The notes under the pieces: generated by a model | What the model was told of the DNA's origin: nothing | Databases searched by the model: none | Seen by the model: only the letters and a program-made list of their open reading frames with translations | Sequence record: MK250027.1 | DNA length: 64,000 bases | Reading direction: 5' to 3' (one strand) | Position numbers and translations under genes: made by a program | Shown: positions 7,872-57,200 of the stretch, one piece after another | Numbering within the stretch: the first letter of the stretch is position 1 | Layout of the letters: every line of letters begins with the position of its first letter

Positions 7872-8540
7872 TTAGTGATATATATCATTCATTGCGCTAT
7901 CAATAAGATTCTCTGCTTCAAAATGATCTCCAAATCCACCATAAATAATGTAACAAAATATTCCACTAATTTTATCGTCATCGAAGCTTTTATCCTCATA
8001 ATATTCAAGTAGTTTTTGAGTTTCTTCATTACTAATTCCAAATATATCAGACTAATTTTCAAAATATGGTATAATTTCTGCTAATATATATTTTAAAAAT
8101 TTAATAATACGATTCGTATTACGTTCACCCATAATACCTATTAGATAATCATCATCAGGATCACCTTCAAAATTACTAAGTGACAAATGTTTTTTAATAT
8201 ACTTATATATATACATTGTATCTTTTTTATTTAAGTGACCAGTTATCTCACCGTTTAATCTCTTAATCAAAATAGTTTTAAGACATTCCTAAACTGAATC
8301 ATACTGATTAGCTGTCGTAATAGAAGACATATCCCATGTTCTACTTAATGAACCTAATGCTTTTTTAATTTCTACTGATGATACATCATTTGATTCTGCA
8401 TAATCAATAATCATTCTTTTAAGGGCAGTTAATACATCTTTATTTGAACGTGTAGCCATTTCATTAAGTTTTTTCTTAATTACCTTTGAAGTAGAAAGCA
8501 TAATACTTTCATACAATTTTCTTTTCTGATTTTTATTCAT
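7872..8540 (-). CDS. Hypothetical protein, 222 aa (TAG=Gln)
   Basis: Track ORFs 8289..8540 and 8052..8270 are in one frame joined by TAG and continue to TAA 7872. Confidence 0.8.
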
Positions 8541-8565: not shown

Positions 8566-8592
8566 TTATTTATCTAACAAATTATTTATCTA
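8566..8592 (-). promoter_or_regulatory. Tandem TAGATAAATAA motifs
   Basis: Exact copies at 8566-8576 and 8582-8592 upstream of ATG 8540. Confidence 0.55.
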
Positions 8593-15714: not shown

Positions 15715-15725
15715 TAGATAAATAA
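15715..15725 (+). promoter_or_regulatory. TAGATAAATAA motif upstream of tnpB copy 1
   Basis: Exact 11-mer shared with four other upstream sites. Confidence 0.5.
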
Positions 15726-15883: not shown

Positions 15884-17014
15884 ATGATAAAGTCTATTAA
15901 AATACGAATATATCCTGATACTGTTTAGAAAGAATTCATTTCTAAATAGTTAGGTTGTTGTCGATTTATATATAATAAATTATTGTATTATAAGAAAACT
16001 TAGTATGAACAAAATAAGCAACAGATTTCTTGGAAAGAGTTAGGTAAATATTTGACTAATCTAAAGAAACAAGAAGAATATTTATTTCTAAATGGAGTAT
16101 ATAATGTATGTTTATAGCAATCTATAATGGATATGATTAAAGCATATGATAATTTCTTTAAATTACATAAAGGTTATCCTAAATTCAAATCTAAAAAAGA
16201 TACTAAGCAAAGTTGTAGATTTACAAATCAAATATTTAAAAAATCTAATAAAATAAATGGTAATAGGATAACATTAATAAAGCAGTTAAAGAATATATTA
16301 TTTAAATGCTCAAGAAAAGATGAGATATATTTAAATCATAATCAAGATAAAATTCATTCTGTTACTCTTATTAAAACATCTACAAACAAATATTATCTAT
16401 CAATATGTATTGATTATGATATTGTTTAGAAAAAGAAACTAAATAGTGTAATAGGATTAGATTTAGGAATAAAAGATTTTATTGTTGATTCAAATGGTAA
16501 TAGATATGAGAATAAACATTTTTATAAGAGTCAAGAAAAGAAATTAAAAAAATTATAGAAGTAGTTAAGCAAGAAATAGAAAGGAAGTAATAATAGGAAT
16601 AAAGTTAGAATTAAAATTGCAAAAGTTCATGAGAAGATAACAAATCAACGTAATGCGTATTTACATCAAATCACTTCAAAATTAGTTAATGAGAACCAAG
16701 TTATCTGTATTGAAGATTTAAATGTAAATGGAATGATGTCTAATCATAAACTTGCTAAATCTATTCAAGAGTTATCTTTATTTGAATTTAGACGACAACT
16801 TGAATATAAATGTAAATTGTATGGTAGAGATTTAGTTATAATAGATAGATTCTATCCTTCATCTAAAACATGTCATAATTGTGGATATATTTATAAAAAT
16901 TTAAAATTAAGTGAACGTGAATGGATATGTCCACAATGTGGTAAAGTTATAGATAGAGATTATAATGCTTCTTTAAATATTTTAGATGGTGGATTAAAAC
17001 AAATAAATTTATAA
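15884..17014 (+). CDS. tnpB: TnpB RNA-guided endonuclease (IS200/IS605 OrfB type), 376 aa, 8 TAG=Gln
   Basis: MIKSIKIRIYP HTH, VIGLDLGIK (RuvC-I), ICIEDLNV (RuvC-II), CHNCG/CPQCG zinc finger, DRDYNASLNI (RuvC-III); TAGs fall at conserved Gln sites (CLQQS, KLQKQLSKKQKGS). Confidence 0.95.
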
Positions 17015-17791: not shown

Positions 17792-19708
17792 TTATGAATT
17801 GTTTACTATTTTCTCAACTTCTTCTCGCTTCTTATTTGAAACTATCCATCCAGGAGTCTTAACACCATTGATATTCAAGAATTTATTATATTTACAACCT
17901 ATTTCTTTTAACTGATCTTTAATAGGTGCAATATCTTTATAATCTCCATATATAGCAATAGCTCTATCTGAATAATCATAAATATGAACATTACTATTAT
18001 TAACTGGTTTTTCTTCAACAGGTTCTGAAGCAACTTTCTTTGGTCTTCCCCTACGTTTCTTTATTGCAGAATCAATAGAAGTTGTTTCATCATCTTTTAC
18101 GACTCTTACTTTTTTCTTTTCTTCTTTTTGTTTTGCTTTAAGTTCTGCTTTTAATCGTTTAGCTTCTTCCTTTCGCTCTTCAATTATCTTTGCTCTACGT
18201 TCTTCTACCGGTTTAACAATAGTATCACGCATTGTAACAGTTCCACCTTTTTCCATCTTGAATGATGTATGGTCTAACCATTTACAAAATGCAGAATACG
18301 TCTTATATTCATCTTTAATACTTAATCTCTTCATAATAGTATAAGAGATAAATTTATCACCAAGAGATTTAATATATATAGTCCAATTATTTCCAAAATA
18401 TGTTTGTTTTTCTTTAAGATATTTCAAACAATTCTGTTTCATCAATTCATCATCCTCTGCTTTATCTGATGCTTTAAGATTAACCTTATCTATATTTGAT
18501 TTATTTCTAATTAATTCATTTGAAGATGTTTCATTTGATGGTTCCACATATTCATGATGTGGTCCTTTCTTTTCATAATAGCAATCTAAAAACCAATCTT
18601 TAGATGTTAATATGGTTTTCCATTGTGGCTTAGTAGGTTTCCATCTTCTACAATTAGCTGCGAATTTATATGGTCCTAATTGAATCCATATACCAGCACC
18701 TTTACCAGGAAATCCACCAGCAACAAAATCTAATTTAGGTAATATATCCATTGACAAGCCTTCAAATGACATATAAGGTAAAACTCTCCAAGGCCATATT
18801 TCGGTTCTAAACCATATTTTATCACATTTCGGTAAACCAACAAAATTTATTTTCTTACCTATATTATCTAATTCCTGATATGGTTCTTGCTTTGAACGCT
18901 CATCTCGTAACTCCATTTGAATATCATAATTTCCATCGGGTAATCCTATAAAATTATATGTTTTTGGTAAACCTTGATATGTATAAGTATTATTTCTGAA
19001 TGTATCATTTACTTTTTTTATAAATGAATAATCATTCATATTAAAACATTCTTGTAATCCAATACCATCAGCGGATATAATCTCTACAGAATCATCTATC
19101 CAACATCTCAATAAGTCTACTGAAACTTTTGGTTTCGTGTTAGCATACCATGTATTTGAATTATATACAGTTTCAAATAATTTCTTTTCTTTTATTTTAT
19201 CACCATCAATACGAAGGTTCTTTGGATAAATTCCTTTTAATCCAATACTGTCAAAATTTATATTCTTTAAATCCAATACATTTGATTTAGCTTCATCTGA
19301 TTTTGTATCACCAAATCTACCTATTTCTACATTAAATCTCATCAAAACGTTATTAATGCTATATTCTTCTAATTCATCAATAAATTTTTGTGCGCATTCC
19401 AATGTATTAAATGAAACATATGTAAGATAATATTTTGGATTGTCTTTTTCACTTGTATTATAATAAAATGCAACTGTATCATTATCAACGTCAGCATATA
19501 CATGTTTATCATTTTCAACACATCTTGTATATAAGCCTCGTCTTGCACTAAATGTTTGATCAGTTAAATATTGTTCAATCCATTTAAGCATATTTTTACT
19601 CATATTATTAAGCATGTTAGATGTTTCATTATCATCTGTTGTACCAATTACATCTTCAAAATCATCATCGAACAAACTTTCTACCAAACGTTTAATTCCT
19701 TTATTCAT
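17792..19708 (-). CDS. 638-aa hypothetical protein with a K/E-rich linker and a small C-terminal domain; TAG-free
   Basis: Intact track ORF; C-terminal IYDYSDRAIAIYGD...IKDQLKEIGCKYN...PGWIV module. Confidence 0.85.
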   Translation of the reverse strand: MNKGIKRLVESLFDDDFEDVIGTTDDNETSNMLNNMSKNMLKWIEQYLTDQTFSARRGLYTRCVENDKHVYADVDNDTVAFYYNTSEKDNPKYYLTYVSFNTLECAQKFIDELEEYSINNVLMRFNVEIGRFGDTKSDEAKSNVLDLKNINFDSIGLKGIYPKNLRIDGDKIKEKKLFETVYNSNTWYANTKPKVSVDLLRCWIDDSVEIISADGIGLQECFNMNDYSFIKKVNDTFRNNTYTYQGLPKTYNFIGLPDGNYDIQMELRDERSKQEPYQELDNIGKKINFVGLPKCDKIWFRTEIWPWRVLPYMSFEGLSMDILPKLDFVAGGFPGKGAGIWIQLGPYKFAANCRRWKPTKPQWKTILTSKDWFLDCYYEKKGPHHEYVEPSNETSSNELIRNKSNIDKVNLKASDKAEDDELMKQNCLKYLKEKQTYFGNNWTIYIKSLGDKFISYTIMKRLSIKDEYKTYSAFCKWLDHTSFKMEKGGTVTMRDTIVKPVEERRAKIIEERKEEAKRLKAELKAKQKEEKKKVRVVKDDETTSIDSAIKKRRGRPKKVASEPVEEKPVNNSNVHIYDYSDRAIAIYGDYKDIAPIKDQLKEIGCKYNKFLNINGVKTPGWIVSNKKREEVEKIVNNS

Positions 19709-19770
19709 AATTTAAATTATAATTAAAAATTCACATTTTATTATTTATTAAAAAAGGGTAACAATTAGTT

Positions 19771-20955
19771 TTATCTAACTGTACCCTTACCAAATGTTTT
19801 ATTAATTTCTCGTTTAATATCTGTAATCGTATTCTTTATATAATCCTTATCATATTGTAAAATGTAATCTTTAAATCTATTTCCATTATACTTATATCCT
19901 TTAAGTTCATGAAATAGTTGCAAAACTTCATTTAATATATATGTATAATTCTCATCATTATAAAATTTCAATACATCATAAATCTTTTGTCTAATATCAT
20001 TAAACTATTTTTTCAATATATAAAAATCACCTTCTGTATTATGAATCATTCTATTAATTCCTTTTGTAGTATAGCCATTTGATATAAGTAATGCTCTATC
20101 AGTTAATGTATTATACTTATTATATGGTGTTCTAATTTTTAAATTTAAAACTGTATTGAAATTTGTATCTGATTTTTGTCCTAATTTCTTAAATGTTCCA
20201 TCATTATTAAATTCACAATCAATAGCTATAGGTGCTGGCATTACATATGTTTTAAAGTATTCAGCTTCACCTGTTTCTGCATTACAGAAATAAAAGAAAA
20301 ATACAGTAGTAATATTTCTAAGATTTGTTTGACATTTATTTTCTTTTACTTCCAACTATCGCATATCATTAAGAATCTAATCAATACCTTTCATTGCATT
20401 GTTAACTTTACCTTTAAATGTATTATCATCGAAGAAACTACATAAAACAGATTTAACCTCTATATATGTTTCATCTCCATTAGGCTAAGTTAACTTAATA
20501 TCTGGACATTCATTTCTTCCATTTGGTTCATGCTCAATTTTATATCCAATGTTTTCAGGAAATATACAGTGCATTATATGTTCAGAAGCAGAATGACATA
20601 AATTCATAAGTAACGAATCTGTATATACAACCTTATTATCTTTGGACATAAACTATGTTAATGTTCCTCTGAAAGTTATCTTATTTGAATCTTTATTAGT
20701 AACAGTAAAAATAGGATCTTCTAAACCAAATGTCATATAATTATCATCTGTATATTCATGAATATCATTATATAACATATAGAACTATCGTATATACTCA
20801 TCATCTGCAGAGTATTCCAACCACTACTTAATACTGTCTTCCAAATCATTAGCGACAAAAATACTATCATCCAATGATGATAGAAACTATCGTCTTTCTT
20901 CAGGATTATTAATACATTTCAGAATACGCTACGGACTTTTTGATTTGTTACTCAT
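19771..20955 (-). CDS. PD-(D/E)xK nuclease-like protein, 394 aa (TAG=Gln)
   Basis: ATG 20955 to TAA 19771 joins track ORFs 20005..20355 and 19771..19971; ECPDIKLTQPNGDETYIEVKSV motif. Confidence 0.6.
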
Positions 20956-21002
20956 TTATAAATTTTGATTAATTTTATTATGATTATTATAAATCAAATC
21001 TT

Positions 21003-22436
21003 TTAAAAAGTTTTATTAAAATTAATCAAATTCTCTGTTATATTAATATATGTTTCTCCTTTATGGATTGAATCGTTAAATCCATATTCATCTCTTAATT
21101 GTTTACCGAATTTATCTTGTAAATATAATTTAACATTCAAATTCAATACATCGTCATTATCATCAGAAGTTAATACATATACTTCATTAAATTTCAATAC
21201 AATAGGAATCTCTATATGGTCTTCTCCTATAACTATATTAAATTTTGTTAACTAATATTTCTTTATATTATTCTTTATTCGTATAACAAAATTATTATTA
21301 TAAGACTATTCTTTCTATGTATTATTTAGACAATTTTTAAATAACGTAATCAAATTCATTTTTTAACTTAACTATCAATTTATAAAAAATATTTATTTCT
21401 AATTAATTAAATAATTAATAATATGTTTAAAATATAGTTTATCTAATTTCTTAATTAAATATGATAATAGTTCATTATAATCTTTTACTTTTATTTTATA
21501 CATATTATTAAATATCTTTAAATAATATTCATTAAACATACTTTTCTACTATTCAGATAAATCTAAACAGAAATTTAATCTCATATATAACCAATAATAT
21601 TCATTATAAATCTCAGAATATTTACATAAATCACTACGTTTATGTAATTCTATTTCATCTTCTATTTTATTAAACTATCCTATTGTATTTTCTATTCTTG
21701 CTTGAACTTCAGATTTATTTAGTAAATATGCATTACTTATAAGATATTTAAATACATCTCCAACTAATACATGTTTCATCTAAAACTATTTCTGTGGATC
21801 TATATTATTTAATATTAATTTTTTATTATTTGTATTTACTACCGAATCATATCTCTAACTATATAAAATATCTGAATTTAAATCAGCTTCTGATATTTTC
21901 GTTATATACATATCATATATATGTTTTAACTCATGTAATATAACATAATATATGTCAAAATTATTATCATTTAAATCAACACAATTAATATATATTGAAA
22001 CATTATTAACTTTATCATTTTTTATTGTAAACGGACACGAATATACATTTATGTTATTTGTATCAATAACATAACTATTATACTTATTTCTTGATATTAT
22101 ACATGAATCATTCTAATTTTCAAATATATCAGAAACATATATAGTAATATCATTAATCCATTTTGTACATTTACTTAAATCTATATAATAACGTTTAAAA
22201 TATAATTCACCATCTAATCTTGTATCATAATCTAATCCAGATTTTAAATCTTTTATTATTTCATCCGATACTTCCTTTATAATATTTTCATATTCTTTAT
22301 TACCAAATTCTATTTTACCATATGATTCTCTTAATACATATAAATCATGTAAAGATATATTTTTTATTTTCTATGGTGTAAATCTTTCACTTATTAACCC
22401 TAAATATATTTGTTTTGATGATTCTATAAAATACAT
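21003..22436 (-). CDS. HExxH metallopeptidase-like protein, paralog 2, 477 aa (TAG=Gln)
   Basis: ILHELKHIYD...NKSEVQAR; ATG 22436 to TAA 21003. Confidence 0.7.
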
Positions 22437-22481
22437 AATAATTTAAATAGTTTACTTATTTAAATAATTCACTTATTCTGT

Positions 22482-23837
22482 TCAAAAATATGAACAACAT
22501 ATATATGATTTGTGTGAAGTGAATCTAGAAAACTATAGATTAAACTAATCTATAGAAAGTCGATATTTAATTTTCGACTTTTTGAAGAAGTAATATAGTT
22601 CAATTAAATCCTTATATGTAGGTTGTAACTTAAATTCTTCCAACGACTTAAGATACAACTTATTAAACATACTTAAACTAGGTCTCACTATATTCTTTTT
22701 AATATCTTTGGTTTTACTTATATATTGATTATAAAACTCATATCCTCTACGACCTATCTCTATTGACGCTAATACCATATCAGGTAAATTTAATGACCGA
22801 TATAAGAAATTACCAATAAAACTTGAATATTCAGGTTTAACCTTTAATAACTTTATATTGAAGATATTACAACGTTTAGTTAAATTATTAATTAACGTAT
22901 TCCTACACCATGAATTATTCACCAACTTATTATATCGCTTACCTTTATCTAAATCTTTTGATTTAATATTTAAATCTTCAATAGAAATAATCTGACATTT
23001 ATAATATATTGCTTTATTAATTAAATTCTTTACTATCTATATTGTCTCAAAATTCCTTTTATTACTTATATATTTTCTTTCATTAGATTCAGAACTATAC
23101 CCTTTATTCTTTAAATTAAAATCTTTATCATTTAACTTTTTAATAGAATAAATACCAGATTTAACTACATCAAATTCTGATTCTGATTTCCAATTAACAA
23201 TACTCCATCCTATATAATTAGGATTCAAATCCAATGAGAGAACTCTATTCTTTATGAATTTAGTTTCATAATTATAAATATCAGTTTCTTCAAATATTAT
23301 ATAAATATAGTCTAAATCTAATTTATACGCAATCTTTATTTCTTTCCTTTCTTGTTTCTAATATAATTTAGATAGTATTTGTTTACGTTTATTTAGTCCT
23401 ATAAGTTGTAAATTTATTTTAGTAGATTTATTAGGTTTAAAAGTAATATTTTCTAAATCTTGTTCTATATGAAATTTCCTATTTGCCTTAATACCTTTAT
23501 TAACCACTTCACCTATTGAATATATAGATGATAATCTTTTCTATTTAAACTATTTATTAGATATTTTACTTTTTAATCTATCAAAATAATTTTTCTTTCC
23601 ACCAAATATTACCTTATCTTTCTTTGGTATATCATAAAAACTACATTGAATAAACCAACTATCTAATAAATCTACATTATTTAACTATTTAAGTTGCTAT
23701 TTTATATCTTTCTATAATTTACCTTCCTATATTCTATTATATACAAAATGCTATACAGAACTATATTGTCTCATATAATCCTGTATAATATCTAATGACT
23801 AATCATCTGTTTGATATTTAATCTTCAATACTTGCAT
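22482..23837 (-). CDS. tnpB: Divergent TnpB/Cas12f-like RuvC nuclease lacking the zinc finger, 451 aa, 12 TAG=Gln
   Basis: MQVLKIKY N-terminus, VLSLDLNPNYIGW (RuvC-I), ISIEDLN (RuvC-II), KPEYSSFIGN, LPDMVLASIEIGRRG (RuvC-III); ends TGA 22482. Confidence 0.85.
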
Positions 23838-23868
23838 TATTAATTGTATATAATATTATAACTTTTTA

Positions 23869-23879
23869 TTATTTATCTA
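23869..23879 (-). promoter_or_regulatory. TAGATAAATAA motif upstream of tnpB copy 2
   Basis: Exact 11-mer about 30 nt upstream of ATG 23837. Confidence 0.55.
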
Positions 23880-24020
23880 TTTTATTTTTATAAAATACCT
23901 AATTTTATAAAATTTTTATGAAAGTTATTTAAATATTATATTCTAAATTATAAGGTTATTCTTTATATGTCATGTCTTATTTAGTCATTTGCTAAATAAT
24001 GTAATCAAATTCATTAAAAA

Positions 24021-24053
24021 TGGGATTATTACAAGCCATATGTAATAATCCCA
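24021..24053 (-). terminator. Intrinsic terminator of 24065..24622
   Basis: TGGGATTATTACA / TGTAATAATCCCA stem followed by a T run on the minus strand. Confidence 0.8.
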
Positions 24054-24064
24054 ATATCTTTTAT

Positions 24065-24622
24065 TTAGTCTTCATAATTATTAACCATATAATTAAATAC
24101 CTAATCAAATGTTGAGTCAATATTCCAAAAACTTTTTATATCATTTAAGTTTTCATTCGCTAATATCACAGTAGTATCATAAAATTGATTATCATATTCT
24201 TCTATATAATCTTTCATTTCATTACTTAATATACAAACAGTATTATTTGTTTGAAATTCTCTTGACATCTTCAAATCCTTATCATTATATTCTAAATCAT
24301 AAGGGTATTCTTTATAAATGTCAATGGTAGGATTTATAGCTATCAAATTACCATCATAAAACGACTATAACCAGAAATACGCAGATGGTCCATCGGTTAT
24401 TACACATGCGTAATTATCTATATATGCATATATAGTTTCCGAATCAATTTCCATCTATATATTATCAGGTACATAATTATATTGTTTCTAAATATTATCA
24501 AACAATTTAAAGACTATATCATAATTATCACCATAACAAAGATTTATCTGTTCTCTCAACATATCATATTTCTTCTTTGTTTTATAATCATGATCCAGAA
24601 TAATTAAGATTTTTTGTTTCAT
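24065..24622 (-). CDS. Hypothetical protein, possibly a degenerate YqiA-like alpha/beta hydrolase fold, 185 aa (TAG=Gln)
   Basis: CVITDGPSAYFWLQSF...LIAINPT recalls LIGSSLGG...AVLINPA but lacks GxSxG. Confidence 0.55.
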
Positions 24623-24761
24623 AATTAAAAACTTCATTTAATTTTAACTATGTTCATTCGTTTATTCAAATTATTATTCATTAATCTTAATTATTGCTAA
24701 AATATATCCTATAATATTTATTAAACTAAACAATTGTAAAAAATACACTAATATATATTAT

Positions 24762-25652
24762 ATGAAAATAATAGATTTAACACAATATAAAAATTACTAT
24801 TTCATTGGTGATCCACATGGAATAGATATAATTTATAACATATTAAATTCATATATAAATGAAAATAATATGTTAGATAATTCTATTTTATTTTTCTGTG
24901 GTGACAATGGAATAGGATTTGATACTACAGAAGAAACACATAAGAAATTAGAGTTATGTAATGATATTGCAATTAAGCATAATCTCCATTTAATATTAGT
25001 TCGTGGTAATCATGATAATCCATACTTTTATAATGAATCAAATATATTAAATAAAAGTAATATCACATTAGTAGAAGATTATACTATAGTGAAAACATAT
25101 GATAACAATGTATTATGTATAGGCGGATCAATATCTGTTGACAGAACTAATAGGATATTAAATAAAACATGGTGGAAGAAAGAAGAAATAATTCCTATCA
25201 ATGATGAAATAGAAAATGAATTAAGTAATTTAAATTTCAATATTGATATTGTTTGTTCACATAATTGTCCGACTTATGAAAAACCGGAGAATATAGACAA
25301 ATACAATCAAGGAGAAATAGTCGATAATTGGTCCGTATGGGACTCAAAACTTTTAGATGATAACTTTATAGACCGTAGTAAAATGAACGCGATACACGAG
25401 GTTTTACAAGCTAAATTGAAGAATAATCTAAAGTATTGGATATACGGTCACTATCATAATCATTATGAATCTATAAGAACACATCCGAAATTCATTTGTC
25501 TTGATATGTATTATAAAAATATTGTTATAGTAAAAAAAGTAACAACAAAAACATATAAAACAAATGGTTATTTTTATAAAGCAGGTCCTGATATTTTAGA
25601 TATACATGATGAATCTAAATTCAGTAATATAAAATTTATAGAAACAAAATAA
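24762..25652 (+). CDS. Calcineurin-like metallophosphoesterase
   Basis: GDPHG, CGDNG, RGNHD, SHNCP and YGHYH motifs; TAG-free. Confidence 0.9.
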   Translation: MKIIDLTQYKNYYFIGDPHGIDIIYNILNSYINENNMLDNSILFFCGDNGIGFDTTEETHKKLELCNDIAIKHNLHLILVRGNHDNPYFYNESNILNKSNITLVEDYTIVKTYDNNVLCIGGSISVDRTNRILNKTWWKKEEIIPINDEIENELSNLNFNIDIVCSHNCPTYEKPENIDKYNQGEIVDNWSVWDSKLLDDNFIDRSKMNAIHEVLQAKLKNNLKYWIYGHYHNHYESIRTHPKFICLDMYYKNIVIVKKVTTKTYKTNGYFYKAGPDILDIHDESKFSNIKFIETK

Positions 25653-25655
25653 ATT

Positions 25656-26003
25656 ATGAATATAATAATTTGGTTAATAGGATTTATACTATCATTGTTA
25701 TTCAGTATATATTTTACATGGTTCAGTAATAATTATATATATGAATATGATTATTGTATGAGAGGTTTATATGGAAATAAACAATATAAAATAAAATTAC
25801 CAAGATACATTTATCTATTATATGGAATAGGAATGTTTTTATATATAATCAATTTATTTATGGTATTTGGATGTATATTATTTTTCTGTATTGCAACAAC
25901 AGATAATTGGACTAAATATCATTATATAGGAAAGAATAAATTTATATTAAAATATATAGATATAAAAAATAAAATAAAAATGTATCTTACATTAAAAGTA
26001 TAA
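25656..26003 (+). CDS. Membrane protein with two hydrophobic segments
   Basis: Track ORF with hydrophobic N-terminal and central stretches. Confidence 0.65.
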   Translation: MNIIIWLIGFILSLLFSIYFTWFSNNYIYEYDYCMRGLYGNKQYKIKLPRYIYLLYGIGMFLYIINLFMVFGCILFFCIATTDNWTKYHYIGKNKFILKYIDIKNKIKMYLTLKV

Positions 26004-26098
26004 TTTATATATAAAGTAAAATTAATTTACATTTTTCGAAGACTTACCTTAGTAAATTACTAAATTCTTCAATAATATAAGATAAATTAATAATTAAA

Positions 26099-26201
26099 NN
26101 NNNNNNNNNNNNNNNNNNNNNNNNNNNNNNNNNNNNNNNNNNNNNNNNNNNNNNNNNNNNNNNNNNNNNNNNNNNNNNNNNNNNNNNNNNNNNNNNNNNN
26201 N
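26099..26201. other. Assembly gap (103 N)
   Basis: Run of N. Confidence 1.
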
Positions 26202-26247
26202 ATAAAAATTAAAAATAGTTTATAACTTATTAATAATCAATAAAATA

Positions 26248-26279
26248 AAAGAGTGAATAATTTAAATTATTCACTCTTT
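26248..26279 (-). terminator. Intrinsic terminator
   Basis: AAAGAGTGAATAATTT / AAATTATTCACTCTTT palindrome downstream of the 26297 stop. Confidence 0.75.
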
Positions 26280-26296
26280 CTTTATATTTTTTAAAT

Positions 26297-27205
26297 CTAT
26301 TCTACTTTACTTCCACAATATGGACAAAACTTAAACTTTGTATTCAATTTTCTCCCACAATTAGTACAATAAACTTTATTCAAATCATTCACATTATAAG
26401 GTTTTCTACTCATAGGTAAAATCTTTATATACTCTGACTTATAAGGATAATTATCAAAATCGTTATAAACAGATTCGAACTTCTGATTTGAATAACTTCC
26501 TTTCTCTATTCTACCTGTTTCAAATAATTTATTTATACTATCAGATGAAATTGATTTACTAAAAGATTTTATTGAACTTGCATTTAATGTTGATGCTGAT
26601 GTTTCAATTCCACTTGTATTAATAGCAGTATCTTTTAATAAAGATGTAGAACATAATCTTGTATCATTCATAATTTGATTCTTATCATCCATTATAGAAC
26701 TTGTGTTATTAACACATGTTGTTTTATAAACAAATGGTGAAATAGAGGGATTACTCAATGGATTATTTAATGGTTTACTAATAAGTGGTTCATTCAAATT
26801 ATGATTTAACCAATAATTACCATCATCTATTAATTTATAGATTTTATCATTTCTTTCTCTATAAAACTTTACTGTAATATTACCATTATTTCTAATAGCA
26901 TTTTTTACTTGTTCATTATTATCATCTACTTCATAAGTAGAAAACTTAAATTTCTTATTATCATTTAAGTAACGTTCCAACCAACATCTTTGTCCAGGTT
27001 TAAGAACCAGCATTCCATCTAACTTATTTTCATTAATATAAATTTCTATACCAATATTATAAGTCTCTGGATTAAATAACATAATTTCAAATTCTGTGTT
27101 ATCATTCATATAAACAACACGTGAATCTTCATTAGTCTAATACTCTTTCAATAGAGATTTGTTGACAGCTATCTTTGCCATCTTGTTTTCTTCTGTAATA
27201 ATCAT
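26297..27205 (-). CDS. Phage protein with a C-terminal double-CxxC zinc ribbon (TAG=Gln; start uncertain)
   Basis: Track ORF extends through one TAG to MIITEENKMAKIAVNKSLLKEYQ; ends CTNCG...CPYCG. Confidence 0.75.
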
Positions 27206-27269
27206 AAGTCTTAATTTATATTTTATTTTAAACTTATCTATTAAACAATCGATTCTCTATATAAAAATC

Positions 27270-27797
27270 TCAAAAGAACTTTGTTTCATTCTCTGTCTAA
27301 TAGAATATCATTATCTATATTTTTCNNNNNNNNNNNNNNNNNNNNNNNNNNNNNNNNNNNNNNNNNNNNNNNNNNNNNNNNNNNNNNNNNNNNNNNNNNN
27401 NNNNNNNNNNNNNNNNNNNNNNNNNNNNNNNNNNNNNNNNNNNNNNNNNNNNNNNNNNNNNNNNNNNNNNNNNNNNNNNNNNNNNNNNNNNNNNNNNNNN
27501 NNNNNNNNNNNNNNNNNNNNNNNNNNNNNNNNNNNNNNNNNNNNNNNNNNNNNNNNNNNNNNNNNNNNNNNNNNNNNNNNNNNNNNNNNNNNNNNNNNNN
27601 NNNNNNNNNNNNNNNNNNNNNNNNNNNNNNNNNNNNNNNNNNNNNNNNNNNNNNNNNNNNNNNNNNNNNNNNNNNNNNNNNNNNNNNNNNNNNNNNNNNN
27701 NNNNNNNNNNNNNNNNNNNNNNNNNNNNNNNNNNNNNNNNNNNNNNNNNNNNNNNNNNNNNNNNNNNNNNNNNNNNNNNNNCGAAAAAAGTCTACAT
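27270..27797 (-). CDS. Hypothetical gene spanning the N gap (about 175 aa)
   Basis: ATG TAG ACT TTT TTC (MQTFF) right of the gap is in frame with EKIQIMIFYQTENETKFF-TGA left of the gap. Confidence 0.45.
27326..27781. other. Assembly gap (456 N)
   Basis: Run of N. Confidence 1.
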
Positions 27798-36508: not shown

Positions 36509-36580
36509 GCATGATTAGCTAAGTGGTACAGCAGGAAACTTTAAACTTCCAGATCACGGGTTCGATCCCTGTATCATGCA
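36509..36580 (+). tRNA. tRNA with anticodon UUA (ochre suppressor-type), no encoded CCA
   Basis: Acceptor GCATGAT/ATCATGC, D arm with GG, anticodon stem GGAAA/CTTCC, loop CT-TTA-AA (TTA at 36541-36543), T arm ACGGG-TTCGATC-CCTGT, discriminator A. Confidence 0.9.
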
Positions 36581-36610
36581 CATCTAAATTTAAAATAAAA
36601 GTATAAAACT

Positions 36611-39418: not shown

Positions 39419-42400
39419 TTATAATTGATATATTGTACTCATACCTATAGTTGTTATTTCATCTTTAATCCCATGAACATAGAACTATACAACTAATTGT
39501 AATATACCTATTTCTTTCCTACCAGAATTATTTTCTGATATATAATCTGTTATTATACCTCGTTGATTATGTAATATCTTGAAGTCTTTTATTTTTAACA
39601 TTGAATCTTCAAATTTTTCCGATGATATTTCTTCTATTTCCCCACCAGATCTTTCCAATGTATATCTTATATTATGAATATAATCTCTAATAACATACTC
39701 TTCAATACTATCTAATCCTTCTTTAGGTAAATCTTTAACATCAAACATTAAGTTATATATATTAGTTGTAACAGAAGTACCATATTGTTTAATAGATAAT
39801 GAATGAATCTACTCATGTTGTATAAGGTCTCTATCAGATTTCTTGTCAATTGTCAACATACATTGTAATTCACCAATTTTTGATTTATGTGATTCTGTTG
39901 CTTCCTTTGCAGTAAATTTAACTTTATTTGTTTTTGAAACATTACCTTTCTATGTCAGAAGATTACATGTACATCCTTCTTGTTCGACAATGGTTCCGTC
40001 ACTATAATAAATTTTATACTTAACAGAAACATTATTAGAGTTATCAGTAGATGCACCAGTTTCATTCATATTATAAATAACAGTTTCACCGTAAGTTGAT
40101 AATGTATTTAATGGTGAGAACTATGATTCAAATCCCACAATAAATACATCTTTATAATATATGTCACGAGTACCTGTTTCAAATTTACCTACGGTATCTT
40201 CTCCTTTATCTACATAAACAAAACCATCTGCTTCATTTATAACTCTATTACCATATACGTCACAACAAATCATATTAGGCGATTGTGAACCTAATAATTC
40301 TGGTTTAATAGTTAATATCTTATTTGCAGATTTAAACACAACTTGCTTATCTATTAATCCTTGTTCTGTTTGCCATGTTTCCTAATCTTCTATTATATAT
40401 GATTTCCAATCCCAATGAACTCTTAACGGAATATCTTTATCATTAAATTTCTATGATAATATATTCTATGAAGAATCTGGTTTTAATATAATATTTCTAC
40501 CCTTTGATATTGTAACAGGTTTATCTTTGAATACATAAAGATTTTCATTTGTATATTGAAGACTTGCGTCTATCCATATATTCTGTAAAAGTTTAGGATC
40601 ATAATCAAATACCTAGGCGGAATATGTAGTATCGAGATAACTGTCAAATAACAATGGTTTTGGTTCATATGTCACAGAAGTTCTCTATACGACACCTTTA
40701 TTATATCTTGATGTAAATTCTTCTCCATAACTATTAACACGCAATATATACTATGCTGCACGTAAATGTGCAGGACACATCTTTAATTTATATGGATTAA
40801 GTGTCGTTAATTTACCACCGGCATTTAATGTACGTTCTGCTTTATTATGATATAACTTATTATTGAATTTCTATAAATCAACTACACCATTTAATGTATA
40901 TGTAAATGTATTATCTTCATTCTATGATATATTAATAATTCTATATGCTGTTTCATTATCTATCGCATTATTTGTATAATCATTATGAATTTCTGTTTCA
41001 TCAGTATAACAAATTTTAACAACTTGATTCTCCATGAATCTTTGTTTGGTATCATTTGTAATATGAACATAAGATAAATTATTGGATGTATCAACTGTTA
41101 ATTCTTTATCTATTGTACTATTACCTTTGGAATCTTCAAACACATATTCATTTGCTGTATATACATATGCGTTCATGGAATTAATGAAGAATGCAGATGA
41201 GTTAATAGATGAGTTAACATTTTTATCAATAGATTTCTAATATATATCATCAAATGCTTTTTCATTTAACATGTTTGACTTTTTCTTTACTGTTATGTAA
41301 GAATTATTTAAGTCAAACCTATAATAAGATGAATCTATAATGGATGAATCATGCGTATAGAATTTTTCTACCTCAAATGGATATATATCAACTAATATAT
41401 CTTTTTGAATGCAATCATATATACATAAGCCAACATATGATGAATTTGCTAATATTTCTCTATTTGGACTTTCATCAACCAATATGAATTTATATATATC
41501 ATTAGTTTTCTATATACTTAAAACCTATTCAGTGAAGTTATTGAATACTATGAAATTACCAGGTTTTGGAGTATCAATAGCATATGATATATTATCATAT
41601 TCTATAGTGTTAGGTGAATCAACCAAAGGATCAATATCATATATTCTATATGTCTAAGGGTAAATAGGATAATTACCAAACTTGTCTATATCTTTAAATA
41701 ACTATTCTTGCTCTGTATTTTTTAATTTATCACCTAATGAATTTCTATTATAAAAATCTTTATTATTTACAACTTCTTGTTGATTAAGAATAATATCAAG
41801 ACTTATAGGCTTTGTAGTAACTGTAGTAGTATCATCACTGTTATTCACGAATATATTATTATAATAATCATATGCGTTTACAGAAACAGTATAATTACCT
41901 AATCTGTTTACAGACACATCTACATATCTGTTAGTAGAAACACATTTATCTATTTCCGCATTTGATGTTGCAGTTTTTAATTTTGAACTATCAACAGTAT
42001 AAATAGGAACTCTATCAGATAAGTAAGTATAATTTACAGTTATTGGTTGTTCACTACTTTCTAATTCTTCTCCGAATACTAATTCACATCCGCATGCCTT
42101 ACCATTATTAATATTTAAATCTGATTGCTTATTCCTAAATAATATTCTTCCTTCTATAATCTCAAGAATGTAATCACCTGGTAGTAACTCGTCATTATTA
42201 CCGCATTTATAATTACGGATAATTATCTAAGGTACATTCCATTTATTCTATGATGTATATATGAATTCTGAATCTAAACCATTATAAGTTTTTGAACTTA
42301 TGTTCTTATTTGTTTTCTATGCCCAATATAATTTATACTTATCATAATTTCTTTCATTTTCCATAGGATATAAGAAAACTTTCTAGAAGTCTTTATATAC

Positions 42401-44905
42401 AGGTTCATCAGTTTCCTACTCATATAAAGCATAATATTCTTTACCAGTTTTCTGATCGCTCACAACATTAATTGAATATGCAATATTAGTTTTCCAGTCA
42501 CCGTGACAATACCTTAAATTACCTTGAGTTATTTCAATTATAGGCAATTCAGATTTATCGATTTTAGAAAAATTCTATGTATCATCATAAAATAATATTT
42601 CATTATCCTATATAAGAATAGGGTTCTATATATAAGAAGAATCTGTAAATTCCGCTAATGTACCAGATGAAACATCTTTATTTGTTAATACAAACTAATA
42701 TTCCTATACAGGTACTAATGTTTCTAATGGAGCAGAAACATATATTGACGAATTCAATGTTTCATTATATACTTCATTTATGATAAAATCTTCTATTTCA
42801 AAATCATCATAATCTCCTATTGTTAAAGAATCAAATTCATTTAATGAGCATTTCAACATTGCTGACGAATCTCTAAATAAAATATCATTTATACACATAT
42901 CATCAACAGATGTATCTAAATGTGAAAGAGATGCATCTAATGTATCATTATGATATTCATTATTAGATGAATCTGTTGTTACATTTATATATGGATTATT
43001 ATGAACAATCTTAGGTGTTACTTTAGCAATAGTTGTAATATCCTACAAATGATGCTATGTAACATATGCCTAATTTTTCATTCTCTCAATGATTATTCCT
43101 TCACCACATATATCAGATATATAACAGTTGACACCCAATATATATTTTTCTAACCATTGTTTTACAGAGAATAATTTTGCGAGAATTTCATCCGTTCTGT
43201 ATTCATATATAGGTTTAGTTATAGGAAGTTGAAAAAATACATCTTGTTTTTCAGTAAATCCAGTGCTCAAATCTTGGTGATGTGTATCTTTATTATATGA
43301 TGATTTATATAAACCAGATTCAGGTGAAGTTGTTGGATTATCTTTTGCTGGATTATCCAAACGTCTTGTATACATGGTGATTTTTTCACCTGTTTCATCA
43401 TCTATTTCATTAAGGTGATATATCATGGATAATCTGTTTATCTTCTTATAACGTTCGAACTCACCATATGTAACACCTATTTTCTTTAACTTAGTATTTA
43501 ACGATTCACCTTTCTATAAATCATATGTCTGTAAAGTTACATATCTATCTTTGTTATTCTAATCCTTTATTTTATACCATTCCTTAAATATTAAGTCACC
43601 ATATCCTAAAAATTTGATAGCACCCATCAATGCTTTATATGTACCAACATAAGGGAATATCTGATCATAATTAATCATAAGTTCTTTAGACTTTGTATTA
43701 ATTAATGTCCAGTCAACACCCTATTCATCAACATCTTGTTCCTTAAATATATTAGGATATTTAACAGGATCAGGAATTCCAAAATTTCCTAATAATGCTC
43801 TAAACCTTTCATCTTCCCCTTCAACTTCAGTTAAGAATGTAAACAAACCTAAAATATACTTTTTCTTTGTTTGTGTATTAACAAGATACATTGCCATTAT
43901 ATTTTGATAACATCCTTCAACCTCTGTTTGAAATCCAACAGAGAAATATATTGGTGTATTTTCAGGTGTTTGATTAAATTGATCATAAAAATTTAATTTA
44001 GTATTAACCTCATATGAATCTTCCCATATAATGTTTGCAACAGAATCAGATGATATGAATCTCATTTCAGAATCTTTTTGAAATTCAAATCTCAATGTAT
44101 AATCAGTGTTTGAATTATCGAAAGTAGGTCTACAATTTCCATCGTTAGTATTAGTAATAATAATAAATGTACTGGCAGCTACAAATTCTGTTGAAACTTT
44201 ATCCTATTGAATCTATCCAGTATATCTCACACAAGGAAATAAATCATCATAATTAAAATTATTAACAATAAGATAATTAACAAATGTTCTCTAACCTAAC
44301 ATTTTATTATCTTTCTATGTCTCATCATCAAATTCTGCAATAGTTATTAAGTTATCTATTTTATAATATATTGTCTTTCCATCTTCATCTTTAATTTCCT
44401 CTGTATTTACATTATCAAATATATAATTAATTGGATAATCCTATGTAATAGTTTCAGATAAAGTATGAAAAGTTAATCTTACCGTATTATATACATAATC
44501 TGTTTGTTCTTCAAATTTTTCTTCCCATCTATGCTCATTTCTATTATATATAGTACCAGTGGATTTTGAATAATCAACTTTTTTATTAAATAATATTAAT
44601 TCTTTAATATTATTTAATTCCTTTGTAATTATAGTTTGTCCTGTTTTATGATTTACAATACTGGTATTTACTGTTATTCCAGCGTTAAATAAGAATAAAC
44701 CATGTTTATCTATTACTGTTGTTAATGTATGATTACTATCTGCAATATCATACATGAAATGTCCTGATGGTGTTTCAATAAAATACTGCTCTAACTATGC
44801 ATGCGGAATTATTTCCCATTGAATACTGTATACTTTTTCAACAGGAATTTCATATCCTTTTTCTGTAAAGAAAATTAATTTATCTCTTTCATCTATATTG
44901 TTCAT
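39419..44905 (-). CDS. Very large baseplate/tail structural protein (gp7 / tail-protein-I-like), about 1828 aa (TAG=Gln)
   Basis: Nine track ORFs share one frame from ATG 44905 to TAA 39419; YVGTYKALMGAIKFLGY motif; lies next to gp6/gp25-like genes. Confidence 0.7.
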
Positions 44906-56822: not shown

Positions 56823-57200
56823 ATGATTTATTTTATTTCAGGACATAGAGATATAACAAGAGAAGAATTTAAGAAATATTATGAACCTAAAATTCAAAAA
56901 GTTCTTAAATACGATAAGGATGCTAAATTTGTGGTTGGTGATTATCAAGGTGTAGATATAATGGCTCAAGAATATATTGTATCTTTGGGTTTTTTAAATA
57001 GAATAACTGTATATCATATGTTTGATAAACCTAGAAATTTGGCAGATCCATATATACAACGTTCTGGTGGATACAAAGATGATATTGATAGAGATTCTGC
57101 GATGACACGTGCCAGTGATTTTGATATTGCTTTTGTTCGTGAAGGTAAAGTAAATTCAGGAACAGAACAAAATATAATGAGAAGAGTTAAATTTAGTTAA
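56823..57200 (+). CDS. SLOG-superfamily (YspA/DUF2493-like) protein; TAG-free
   Basis: FISGHRD, VVGDYQGVD, RDSAM...DFDIAF, SGTEQNI motifs. Confidence 0.7.
   Translation: MIYFISGHRDITREEFKKYYEPKIQKVLKYDKDAKFVVGDYQGVDIMAQEYIVSLGFLNRITVYHMFDKPRNLADPYIQRSGGYKDDIDRDSAMTRASDFDIAFVREGKVNSGTEQNIMRRVKFS

Follow-up and report, generated by a model that had tools for sequence, protein, structure and literature searches.

The locus lies in a 64-kb window, the whole stretch of DNA that was analyzed, in which position x corresponds to 310000+x of Prevotella phage Lak-B8 (MK250027), as set by motif coordinates. Over the 4.5 kb compared, 20900-25400, the two sequences are 100% identical. At 22482..23837 on the minus strand, the window holds a 451-aa ORF, here called tnpB, which ends in a TGA stop, is open only when TAG counts as sense and falls into pieces under the standard code. 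With TAG translated as Q, its 12 in-frame TAGs fall at residues 13, 29, 37, 42, 47, 51, 96, 99, 160, 267, 431 and 435, so that nine precede D203. This bears out the protein length, the TAG count and the nine TAGs ahead of RuvC-I given in an earlier reading of the same DNA made from its letters (the sequence-only reading). The same reading described the gene as heavily TAG-recoded, where the 12 TAGs are indeed present but their density of 2.7% is no higher than in other TAG-using genes of the window (2.0-3.2%), many window genes having no TAG at all. Since 2.7% is typical of the TAG-using genes, tnpB is not exceptionally recoded. TAG use across the window is bimodal, with none in 17792..19708 (638 aa), 39 in 39419..44905, and 2-3% in the genes that use the codon. 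Standard-code homologues mostly carry E, Q or K at the tnpB TAG positions, which are variable positions, and these aligned residues are compatible with TAG being read as Q, without being decisive alone; Q is also the published assignment for the Lak phage code (PMC6784885). A tRNA at 36509-36581 (+) is of the suppressor type with anticodon TTA, which reads UAA, although this genome recodes TAG; suppressors of several types are mentioned in the Lak paper.

The gene is framed by several recognizable features. The upstream gene, 24065..24637, is closed by an intrinsic terminator at 24016..24053 on the minus strand, with a 13-bp hairpin and T-run at 24053-24021, which abuts the left end of the insertion described below and confirms the strong terminator that had been seen before tnpB. 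A promoter-like motif, TAGATAAATAA, sits at 23869..23879 on the minus strand, 31 nt before the tnpB ATG, as had also been noticed. On the other side, the gene 21393..22436 (-) begins with an ATG at 22436, leaving 22437-22459 between it and the right end of the insertion; because that end lies only 23 nt before the ATG, the gene is probably transcribed by read-through from the element. No CRISPR-like arrayed repeats were found within 4 kb to either side (19000-27500) and no cas domains in the neighboring genes, and no TnpA is encoded by this copy or anywhere in the 64-kb window. The earlier remark that both transposase and CRISPR array are missing thus holds for the 64-kb window in the case of TnpA and for ±4 kb in the case of the array.

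Inspection of an alignment of 60 diverse family members reveals that D203 (LSLDLNP), E287 (IEDL), D353 (LPDM), R363 and R364 of the window protein are invariant, so the catalytic D/E/D recognized previously is retained across all 60. The same alignment contains no conserved Cys or Cys pair: YSSFIGN leads straight into the RuvC-III helix, with only ~8 residues separating it from D353. No C4 zinc finger (TNB domain) separates RuvC-II from RuvC-III, and PF07282 is unmatched, which agrees with the proposal that YSSFIGN takes the place of the CxxC finger. Loss of the zinc finger is ancestral to the family and common to all of it. Comparison of tnpB with its paralogues, one of the checks proposed beforehand, gives dN/dS values of 0.10-0.30, indicating purifying selection.

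Profile searches and structure comparison place this protein differently. Pfam (including OrfB_IS605) and PHROGs scans of the window TnpB returned no hits, and when all 60 family members were scanned against Pfam, only scattered sub-threshold matches appeared. With NCBIfam models, the protein has TnpB-related hits that all stay below cut-off, the best being TIGR01766 at 20.8 bits against 32, and NF040570, NF038280 and NF038281 are not passed. In contrast to these failures of the curated TnpB models, a profile built from the family matches Cas12f structures in its RuvC-II block, and the AlphaFold (AF2) model (pLDDT 92, pTM 0.85) has Cas12f, TnpB, Cas12k and Fanzor2 as its top Foldseek matches in the PDB, with probability 1.0. 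VIA-align of the model gives Z 17.8 to Cas12f and 16.6 to ISDra2 TnpB (residues 1-370). In the suggested HMM check, Pfam gave nothing and NCBIfam only sub-threshold hits, and the family profile and fold place the protein with TnpB and Cas12f; the proposed identity as a TnpB/Cas12f-like RuvC nuclease is upheld by the fold matches (Z 16-18) and the intact triad. Family membership rests on these two, fold and catalytic triad. The window protein is thus a genuine, divergent TnpB, and its entire family lacks the zinc-finger insertion.

An exhaustive homologue search recovered 1024 clusters at 50% identity, nearly all of full length (430-470 aa) and mostly from huge phages. Because the family is large, found mostly in huge phages and invisible to the Pfam and NCBIfam TnpB models, it is likely under-annotated. 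According to a TnpB/Cas12 census, the C4 finger has been lost from certain large branches of TnpB, a part of which is virus-enriched (PMC10691335). Membership in one such clade, RIIIr-4, was considered and rejected: RIIIr-4 is described with a His at the RuvC-III position (PMC10691335), whereas D353 is invariant here, so that the window family probably represents another branch.

The gene lies within a segment of ~1.55 kb that is missing from the otherwise near-identical Lak-B4, whose flanks are 99.7-100% identical. At the empty Lak-B4 site, window sequence up to 22469 is joined to sequence from 24013 onward with a 3-nt overlap. We place the inserted segment at 22460..24015 on the minus strand, with a well-defined right end at 22460 and a left end that carries a margin of ~75-125 nt. 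Homology between copies ends after TTATTTAA, at window position 22460, and a contig from one sequencing run (X1) breaks at exactly this base. The span common to other copies extends from 22418/22460 to about 23890-23941; the leftmost ~75-125 nt of the insert is not common to them and contains two short duplicates of nearby sequence. One of these, 23972-24015, has an 86% match at 21317-21360, where the 118-aa gene 21003..21359 starts, both copies beginning AATGAATTTGATTAC; the other pairs 23935-23967 with 24284-24316 (94% match), the latter within the upstream gene 24065..24637. The duplicates possibly originate as a solo left end, as filler DNA or as a regulatory repeat.

Two further pairs of occupied and empty sites were found, Lak-C1 at 47 kb compared with Lak-A1/A2 and Lak-B8 at 517 kb compared with Lak-B4, and the Lak-C1 insertion, too, follows directly on a terminator hairpin and T-run. 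Relative to the occupied alleles, each of the three empty ones has 6 to ~36 additional nt, and no target duplication is seen. TAA closes the left flank of the window copy and of five of six copies in a standard-code phage, and it stands (as TATAA or TGTAA) ahead of the right flank at every one of the three empty sites. We looked for the GG ends, GG insertion sites and G-rich target motif of IS607 and found AA/TAA ends and AT-rich flanks in their place. The left end and the crossover dinucleotide were sought in the three occupied/empty pairs and the six standard-code-phage copies; an AA core preceded by T fits most junctions, but seamless joints result from no model.

The 3' end of the element carries a second conserved feature. 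The last ~220-245 nt retain 75-80% nucleotide identity in copies whose proteins are ~54% identical, and synonymous divergence in this stretch is roughly halved in six of eight comparisons. Folding gives a z-score of -3.25 relative to shuffled sequence. The consensus structure from 27 copies contains 44 pairs, half of which (22) show compensatory double changes, and pairing reaches 95.4% at the true partners compared with 28-48% at partners shifted by 1-3 columns and 86.1 ± 0.5% in column shuffles. Two adjacent hairpins are conserved within 22533..22578 (-), at 22560-22578 and 22533-22555, where among copies compensatory changes replace G-C by U-A and A-U by G-C. A terminal long-range stem of 8 bp at 22467..22524 (-), formed by a 5' arm at 22524-22517 and a 3' arm at 22474-22467, is separated from the right end by UAUUUAA; its sequence differs in almost every lineage and remains complementary in ~22 of the 27 copies. 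On this covariation, the 3'-terminal ~220 nt is expected to be an omegaRNA scaffold. The predicted scaffold occupies 22460..22705 on the minus strand, with its 5' limit within 22677-22705, overlaps the last ~75 codons of tnpB and runs to the right end. The earlier suggestion that a guide RNA might overlap the 3' end of the gene is thereby substantiated, with a covarying structure that extends to the right end. An Rfam scan of the element matched no family, RAGATH-18 included; a 15.6-bit RAGATH-12 match, on the wrong strand only, is noise.

From the architecture of TnpB/omegaRNA systems, the candidate guide would be the ~16-20 nt of flank past the right end, that is, 22440..22459 on the minus strand, which overlaps the 5' leader of the gene with its ATG at 22436. 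The 20-mer at 22440-22459 stands directly after TATAA in the empty Lak-B4 site and after TATTTAA in the occupied genome. Solo scaffold copies of ~200 nt were found in Lak-A1, B4, B8 and C1. Standalone relatives without tnpB lie at 336027-336225, 384290-384497, 68759-68950 and 173661-173855 in Lak-C1, at 177418-177635 in Lak-A1, and at 78883, 127393 and 189389 in Lak-B8. In the two solo scaffolds that were examined, at 336 kb in Lak-C1 and 177 kb in Lak-A1, the terminal stem differs in sequence and keeps its pairing. It is possible that these standalone scaffolds serve as solo guide RNAs. Standalone omegaRNAs are known for other OMEGA systems, and standalone omegaRNAs and solo TnpBs are mobile (PMC10691335).

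To characterize the distribution of the element, copies were compared across Lak genomes, which contain from zero to at least five at differing sites. By tblastn, each Lak record has one to five places at different coordinates (one to three in the other Lak-B genomes), Lak-B4 has no full-length copy, and DNA matches agree. A copy at the same site is kept in eight of nine Lak-B genomes. Several huge-phage contigs hold three to six family copies each. In Lak-B8 at 517-519 kb, outside the 64-kb window, lies an intact tnpA plus tnpB that is absent from Lak-B4 (locus L013, 917-1522 and 1572-2921), where a 201-aa ORF with five TAGs stands upstream of a 449-aa TnpB with 11 TAGs. The TnpA of this copy scores 171.7 bits on NF033518, 'IS607 family transposase' (cut-off 110), and also matches Pfam Resolvase. 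In viral and genome collections, a serine recombinase likewise stands directly upstream of tnpB at approximately 19 further loci of the family; the genome-contig scan, which used one narrow peptide pattern and matched mostly MAG contigs, is not a gauge of how frequent the family is in bacteria. In a maximum-likelihood tree, the window TnpB is sister, with support of 99/95, to two TnpA-linked copies, one of which is situated elsewhere in Lak-B8, beyond the 64-kb window. Since TnpA is missing here and these sister copies carry it, the window copy can be described as a non-autonomous derivative. Mobile behavior rests on the multi-copy state, on presence and absence at given sites, and on the TnpA linkage of the sister copies.

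Sequencing runs, one of them an RNA run, were analyzed as assembled contigs. In pig-gut runs, contigs cover the element and not its flanks, and many database homologues lie on contigs of 1.5-2.5 kb; both patterns are of the kind that a repeated element yields. Depth across runs peaks at 22596-22682. One pig-gut run (X3) joins 22677 to 23853 at high depth, skipping 1175 nt of tnpB and fusing the promoter region to the scaffold region in a miniature derivative. A further viral contig (L054, IMGVR_UViG_3300013901_000216) is composite: its left flank, tnpA and the 5' part of tnpB are those of the 517 kb copy, while its tnpB 3' part and right flank are those of the window copy. This contig represents either an inversion through recombination between two oppositely oriented copies or an assembly chimera.

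In the promoter-like motif, the sequence-only reading had seen a promoter shared by two TnpBs and selected for stage-specific expression. The other TnpB of the window, at 15884-17014 (+), is canonical, with 376 aa, eight TAGs, HTH, OrfB_IS605 and zinc-ribbon domains, and it passes NF040570; TAGATAAATAA stands 160 nt upstream of it, at 15715-15725. The sole BLASTP match between the two proteins is local, covering 35 residues with E 0.001. The earlier description of tnpB as a second, unrelated zinc-finger-less TnpB therefore stands in that the two are unrelated at the sequence level, with the qualification that the one at 15884-17014 has a zinc ribbon. Exact matches to TAGATAAATAA number five in the window, where 0.85 are expected, and 13 in Lak-B8, where a control pattern gives two. 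The motif is conserved before tnpB, and before tnpA, both among Lak copies and among those of a standard-code phage, which has at least five; in Lak-B8, it also precedes tail-sheath, HNH-like, SSB-like and small unknown genes as well as a tRNA. The claim of a TnpB-specific promoter is contradicted by these occurrences at unrelated genes and a tRNA and by the passage of the motif with the element in unrelated phages, and TAGATAAATAA resembles a general phage promoter carried along within the element. Two copies at 8566-8576 and 8582-8592 (-), 16 nt apart, lie upstream of 7872..8540, and a tandem TAGATAAATAA-like pair occurs at 57200 and 57212 in Lak-B8.

Taken as a whole, we consider it probable, at about 85%, that tnpB encodes the TnpB of a non-autonomous IS607-family TnpB/omegaRNA element resident in Lak megaphage genomes. 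This assignment has its own difficulties, in that no TnpA is present here, the protein passes none of the curated TnpB HMMs, AA/TAA takes the place of GG at the ends, the left junctions are non-seamless by 6 to ~36 nt, and the outermost left portion is not common to other copies. The sequence-only reading had proposed instead a domesticated, immobile RNA-guided nuclease, expressed at a defined stage from a promoter common to two TnpB lineages and used, for example, to attack host or competitor DNA. An intact triad under purifying selection, the missing TnpA, the same 11-mer upstream of both TnpBs and the retention of the site in eight of nine Lak-B genomes would all suit such a nuclease. We nevertheless regard it as very improbable, for the Lak-B4 site is empty, copy number and sites vary, sister copies carry TnpA, the guide position is set by the flank as in transposon-borne TnpBs, and the 11-mer accompanies the element in unrelated phages and precedes tail-sheath, SSB-like and HNH-like genes and a tRNA. 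Both comparisons that the sequence-only reading had proposed speak to this point: in phylogeny, the TnpB clusters with mobile IS607 TnpBs (ISCaje4 and the TnpA-linked sister copies), and in synteny, insertion sites vary between and within Lak genomes. Because of this clustering, these variable sites and the one empty site in a close relative, the outcome is the one that the sequence-only reading had itself named as refuting its proposal, and a domesticated, non-mobile phage nuclease is contradicted by the mobile IS607 relatives, the varying sites and the empty Lak-B4 site.

Decay offers another explanation, with the locus as a relic of an old insertion that has no present function. Although the lack of tnpA, the lost zinc finger and an atypical left end could be taken as signs of erosion, this is barely credible for a full-length ORF that is kept in many genomes with dN/dS of 0.10-0.30 and an invariant triad, whose finger was already lost in the ancestor of a family with over 1000 clusters and whose RNA structure is maintained by compensatory changes. 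A free-standing homing cassette, for which TnpB-omegaRNA would cut element-free co-infecting Lak genomes and repair would copy the cassette in with little role for TnpA, is a rather unlikely possibility that nonetheless accounts for several observations. In each of the three occupied/empty comparisons, a short intergenic stretch has been replaced, as opposed to a seamless insertion; two insertions lie immediately after terminators between conserved genes; the 20-nt guide match in Lak-B4 comes directly after TATAA where the occupied site has TATTTAA; and this mode has been discussed for OMEGA systems (PMC13565253). However, copies are found at unrelated loci, which requires a transposition step, an intact IS607 transposase is encoded in the same genome, and the imprecision of the junctions could reflect fast evolution of AT-rich spacers. 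The window copy may have arrived through TnpA action, through RNA-guided homing between co-infecting phages, or through both.

For the IS607-family element, the following mode of action can be proposed, in which we infer RNA-guided cleavage, the guide, an AT-rich target motif, mobilization in trans and homing by analogy. In order, the element would comprise a short left end, a promoter-like motif of its own, tnpB and an omegaRNA scaffold that ends at the right end. Its transcript would read ~16-20 nt into the flank, and, as in studied TnpBs, these flank bases would act as the guide. The TnpB-RNA complex could then cut alleles that have the flank sequence after a suitable motif and lack the element, whether an excised donor site or a co-infecting phage without the insertion, after which the break would be repaired by recombination and the element copied in again. 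To reach new sites, the element would need TnpA, the serine recombinase encoded by the full-length Lak-B8 copy. Since tnpA and tnpB both hold in-frame TAGs, their products would be made only while the phage reads TAG as sense. A bolder version, in which a huge-phage IS607 lineage with a compact, zinc-finger-less TnpB and an AT-rich target motif (roughly T-A/T-T-A-A) is locked to the TAG switch and spreads among co-infecting megaphages as an RNA-guided gene drive, drawing extra guides from solo omegaRNAs and promoter-omegaRNA mini-elements, is speculative and we consider it unlikely in full.

The IS607 assignment corrects the reading of this locus, which would hold a selfish mobile element and not a phage-domesticated nuclease. 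In Lak megaphages, even near-identical genomes differ in their IS607 elements, which look active and may cause rearrangements, and the two main descriptive papers on these phages (PMC6784885, PMC8346664) contain no word beginning 'transpos'. The TAG-recoded tnpA and tnpB make this a naturally occurring case of a transposon tied to an alternative genetic code. Features of biochemical interest include a zinc-finger-less TnpB of ~450 aa, a well-defined scaffold of ~220 nt and a probable AT-rich target motif.

Comparison with known systems shows how far the element departs from its relatives. The closest named one is ISCaje4 of Campylobacter phage CP220 (NC_027997), named in ISfinder and annotated as IS200/IS605, whose TnpB is 44% identical over 96% of the window protein, falls in the same size class and has the same YSS...D layout. 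ISCaje4 likewise resides in a large phage and has a truncated serine-recombinase (resolvase-like) ORF directly upstream; it uses the standard code, whereas Lak copies have 9-15 in-frame TAGs, and the window copy is without any tnpA remnant. Canonical IS607 elements and their TnpB-omegaRNA (such as ISXfa1 and the RAGATH-18 RNA; PMC13565253) have TnpA followed by TnpB, an omegaRNA that extends from the 3' end of tnpB to the right end, and solo and mini derivatives, as here, and the two also agree in that no inverted repeats or target duplications are seen. In contrast, canonical IS607 has GG ends and the G-rich target motifs AGGAG and GAGGG (PMC13565253), while the present element has AA/TAA ends, AT-rich flanks, no Rfam match including RAGATH-18 and no zinc ribbon, and it fails NF038280 and NF040570. 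With ISDra2 TnpB and Cas12f (8exa, 8h1j, 7wju, 8j3r), the window protein shares a WED-REC-RuvC fold (residues 1-~390, with 284-317 of them aligned at Z 16-18), the D-E-D triad and a guide at the RNA 3' end, a point predicted for the present element. It differs from them in its identity of only 13-14%, in the missing zinc-finger (TNB) insertion between RuvC-II and RuvC-III, in a conserved C-terminal extension of ~60-80 residues that no match covers, and in having no CRISPR array. Cas12f and other type V CRISPR effectors stand beside CRISPR arrays or adaptation genes, which are not found adjacent to tnpB. Domesticated TnpBs of the TldR type are nuclease-dead and occupy a fixed locus, in contrast to the invariant triad and polymorphic locus described above. 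The zinc-finger-less TnpB branches of the census (PMC10691335) have finger loss in common with the window family, with RIIIr-4 set apart by its His in place of D353. The details of the element, namely the lack of a zinc finger, AT-rich ends, TAG-recoded transposase and nuclease, and bias toward huge phages, are unusual, not unprecedented.
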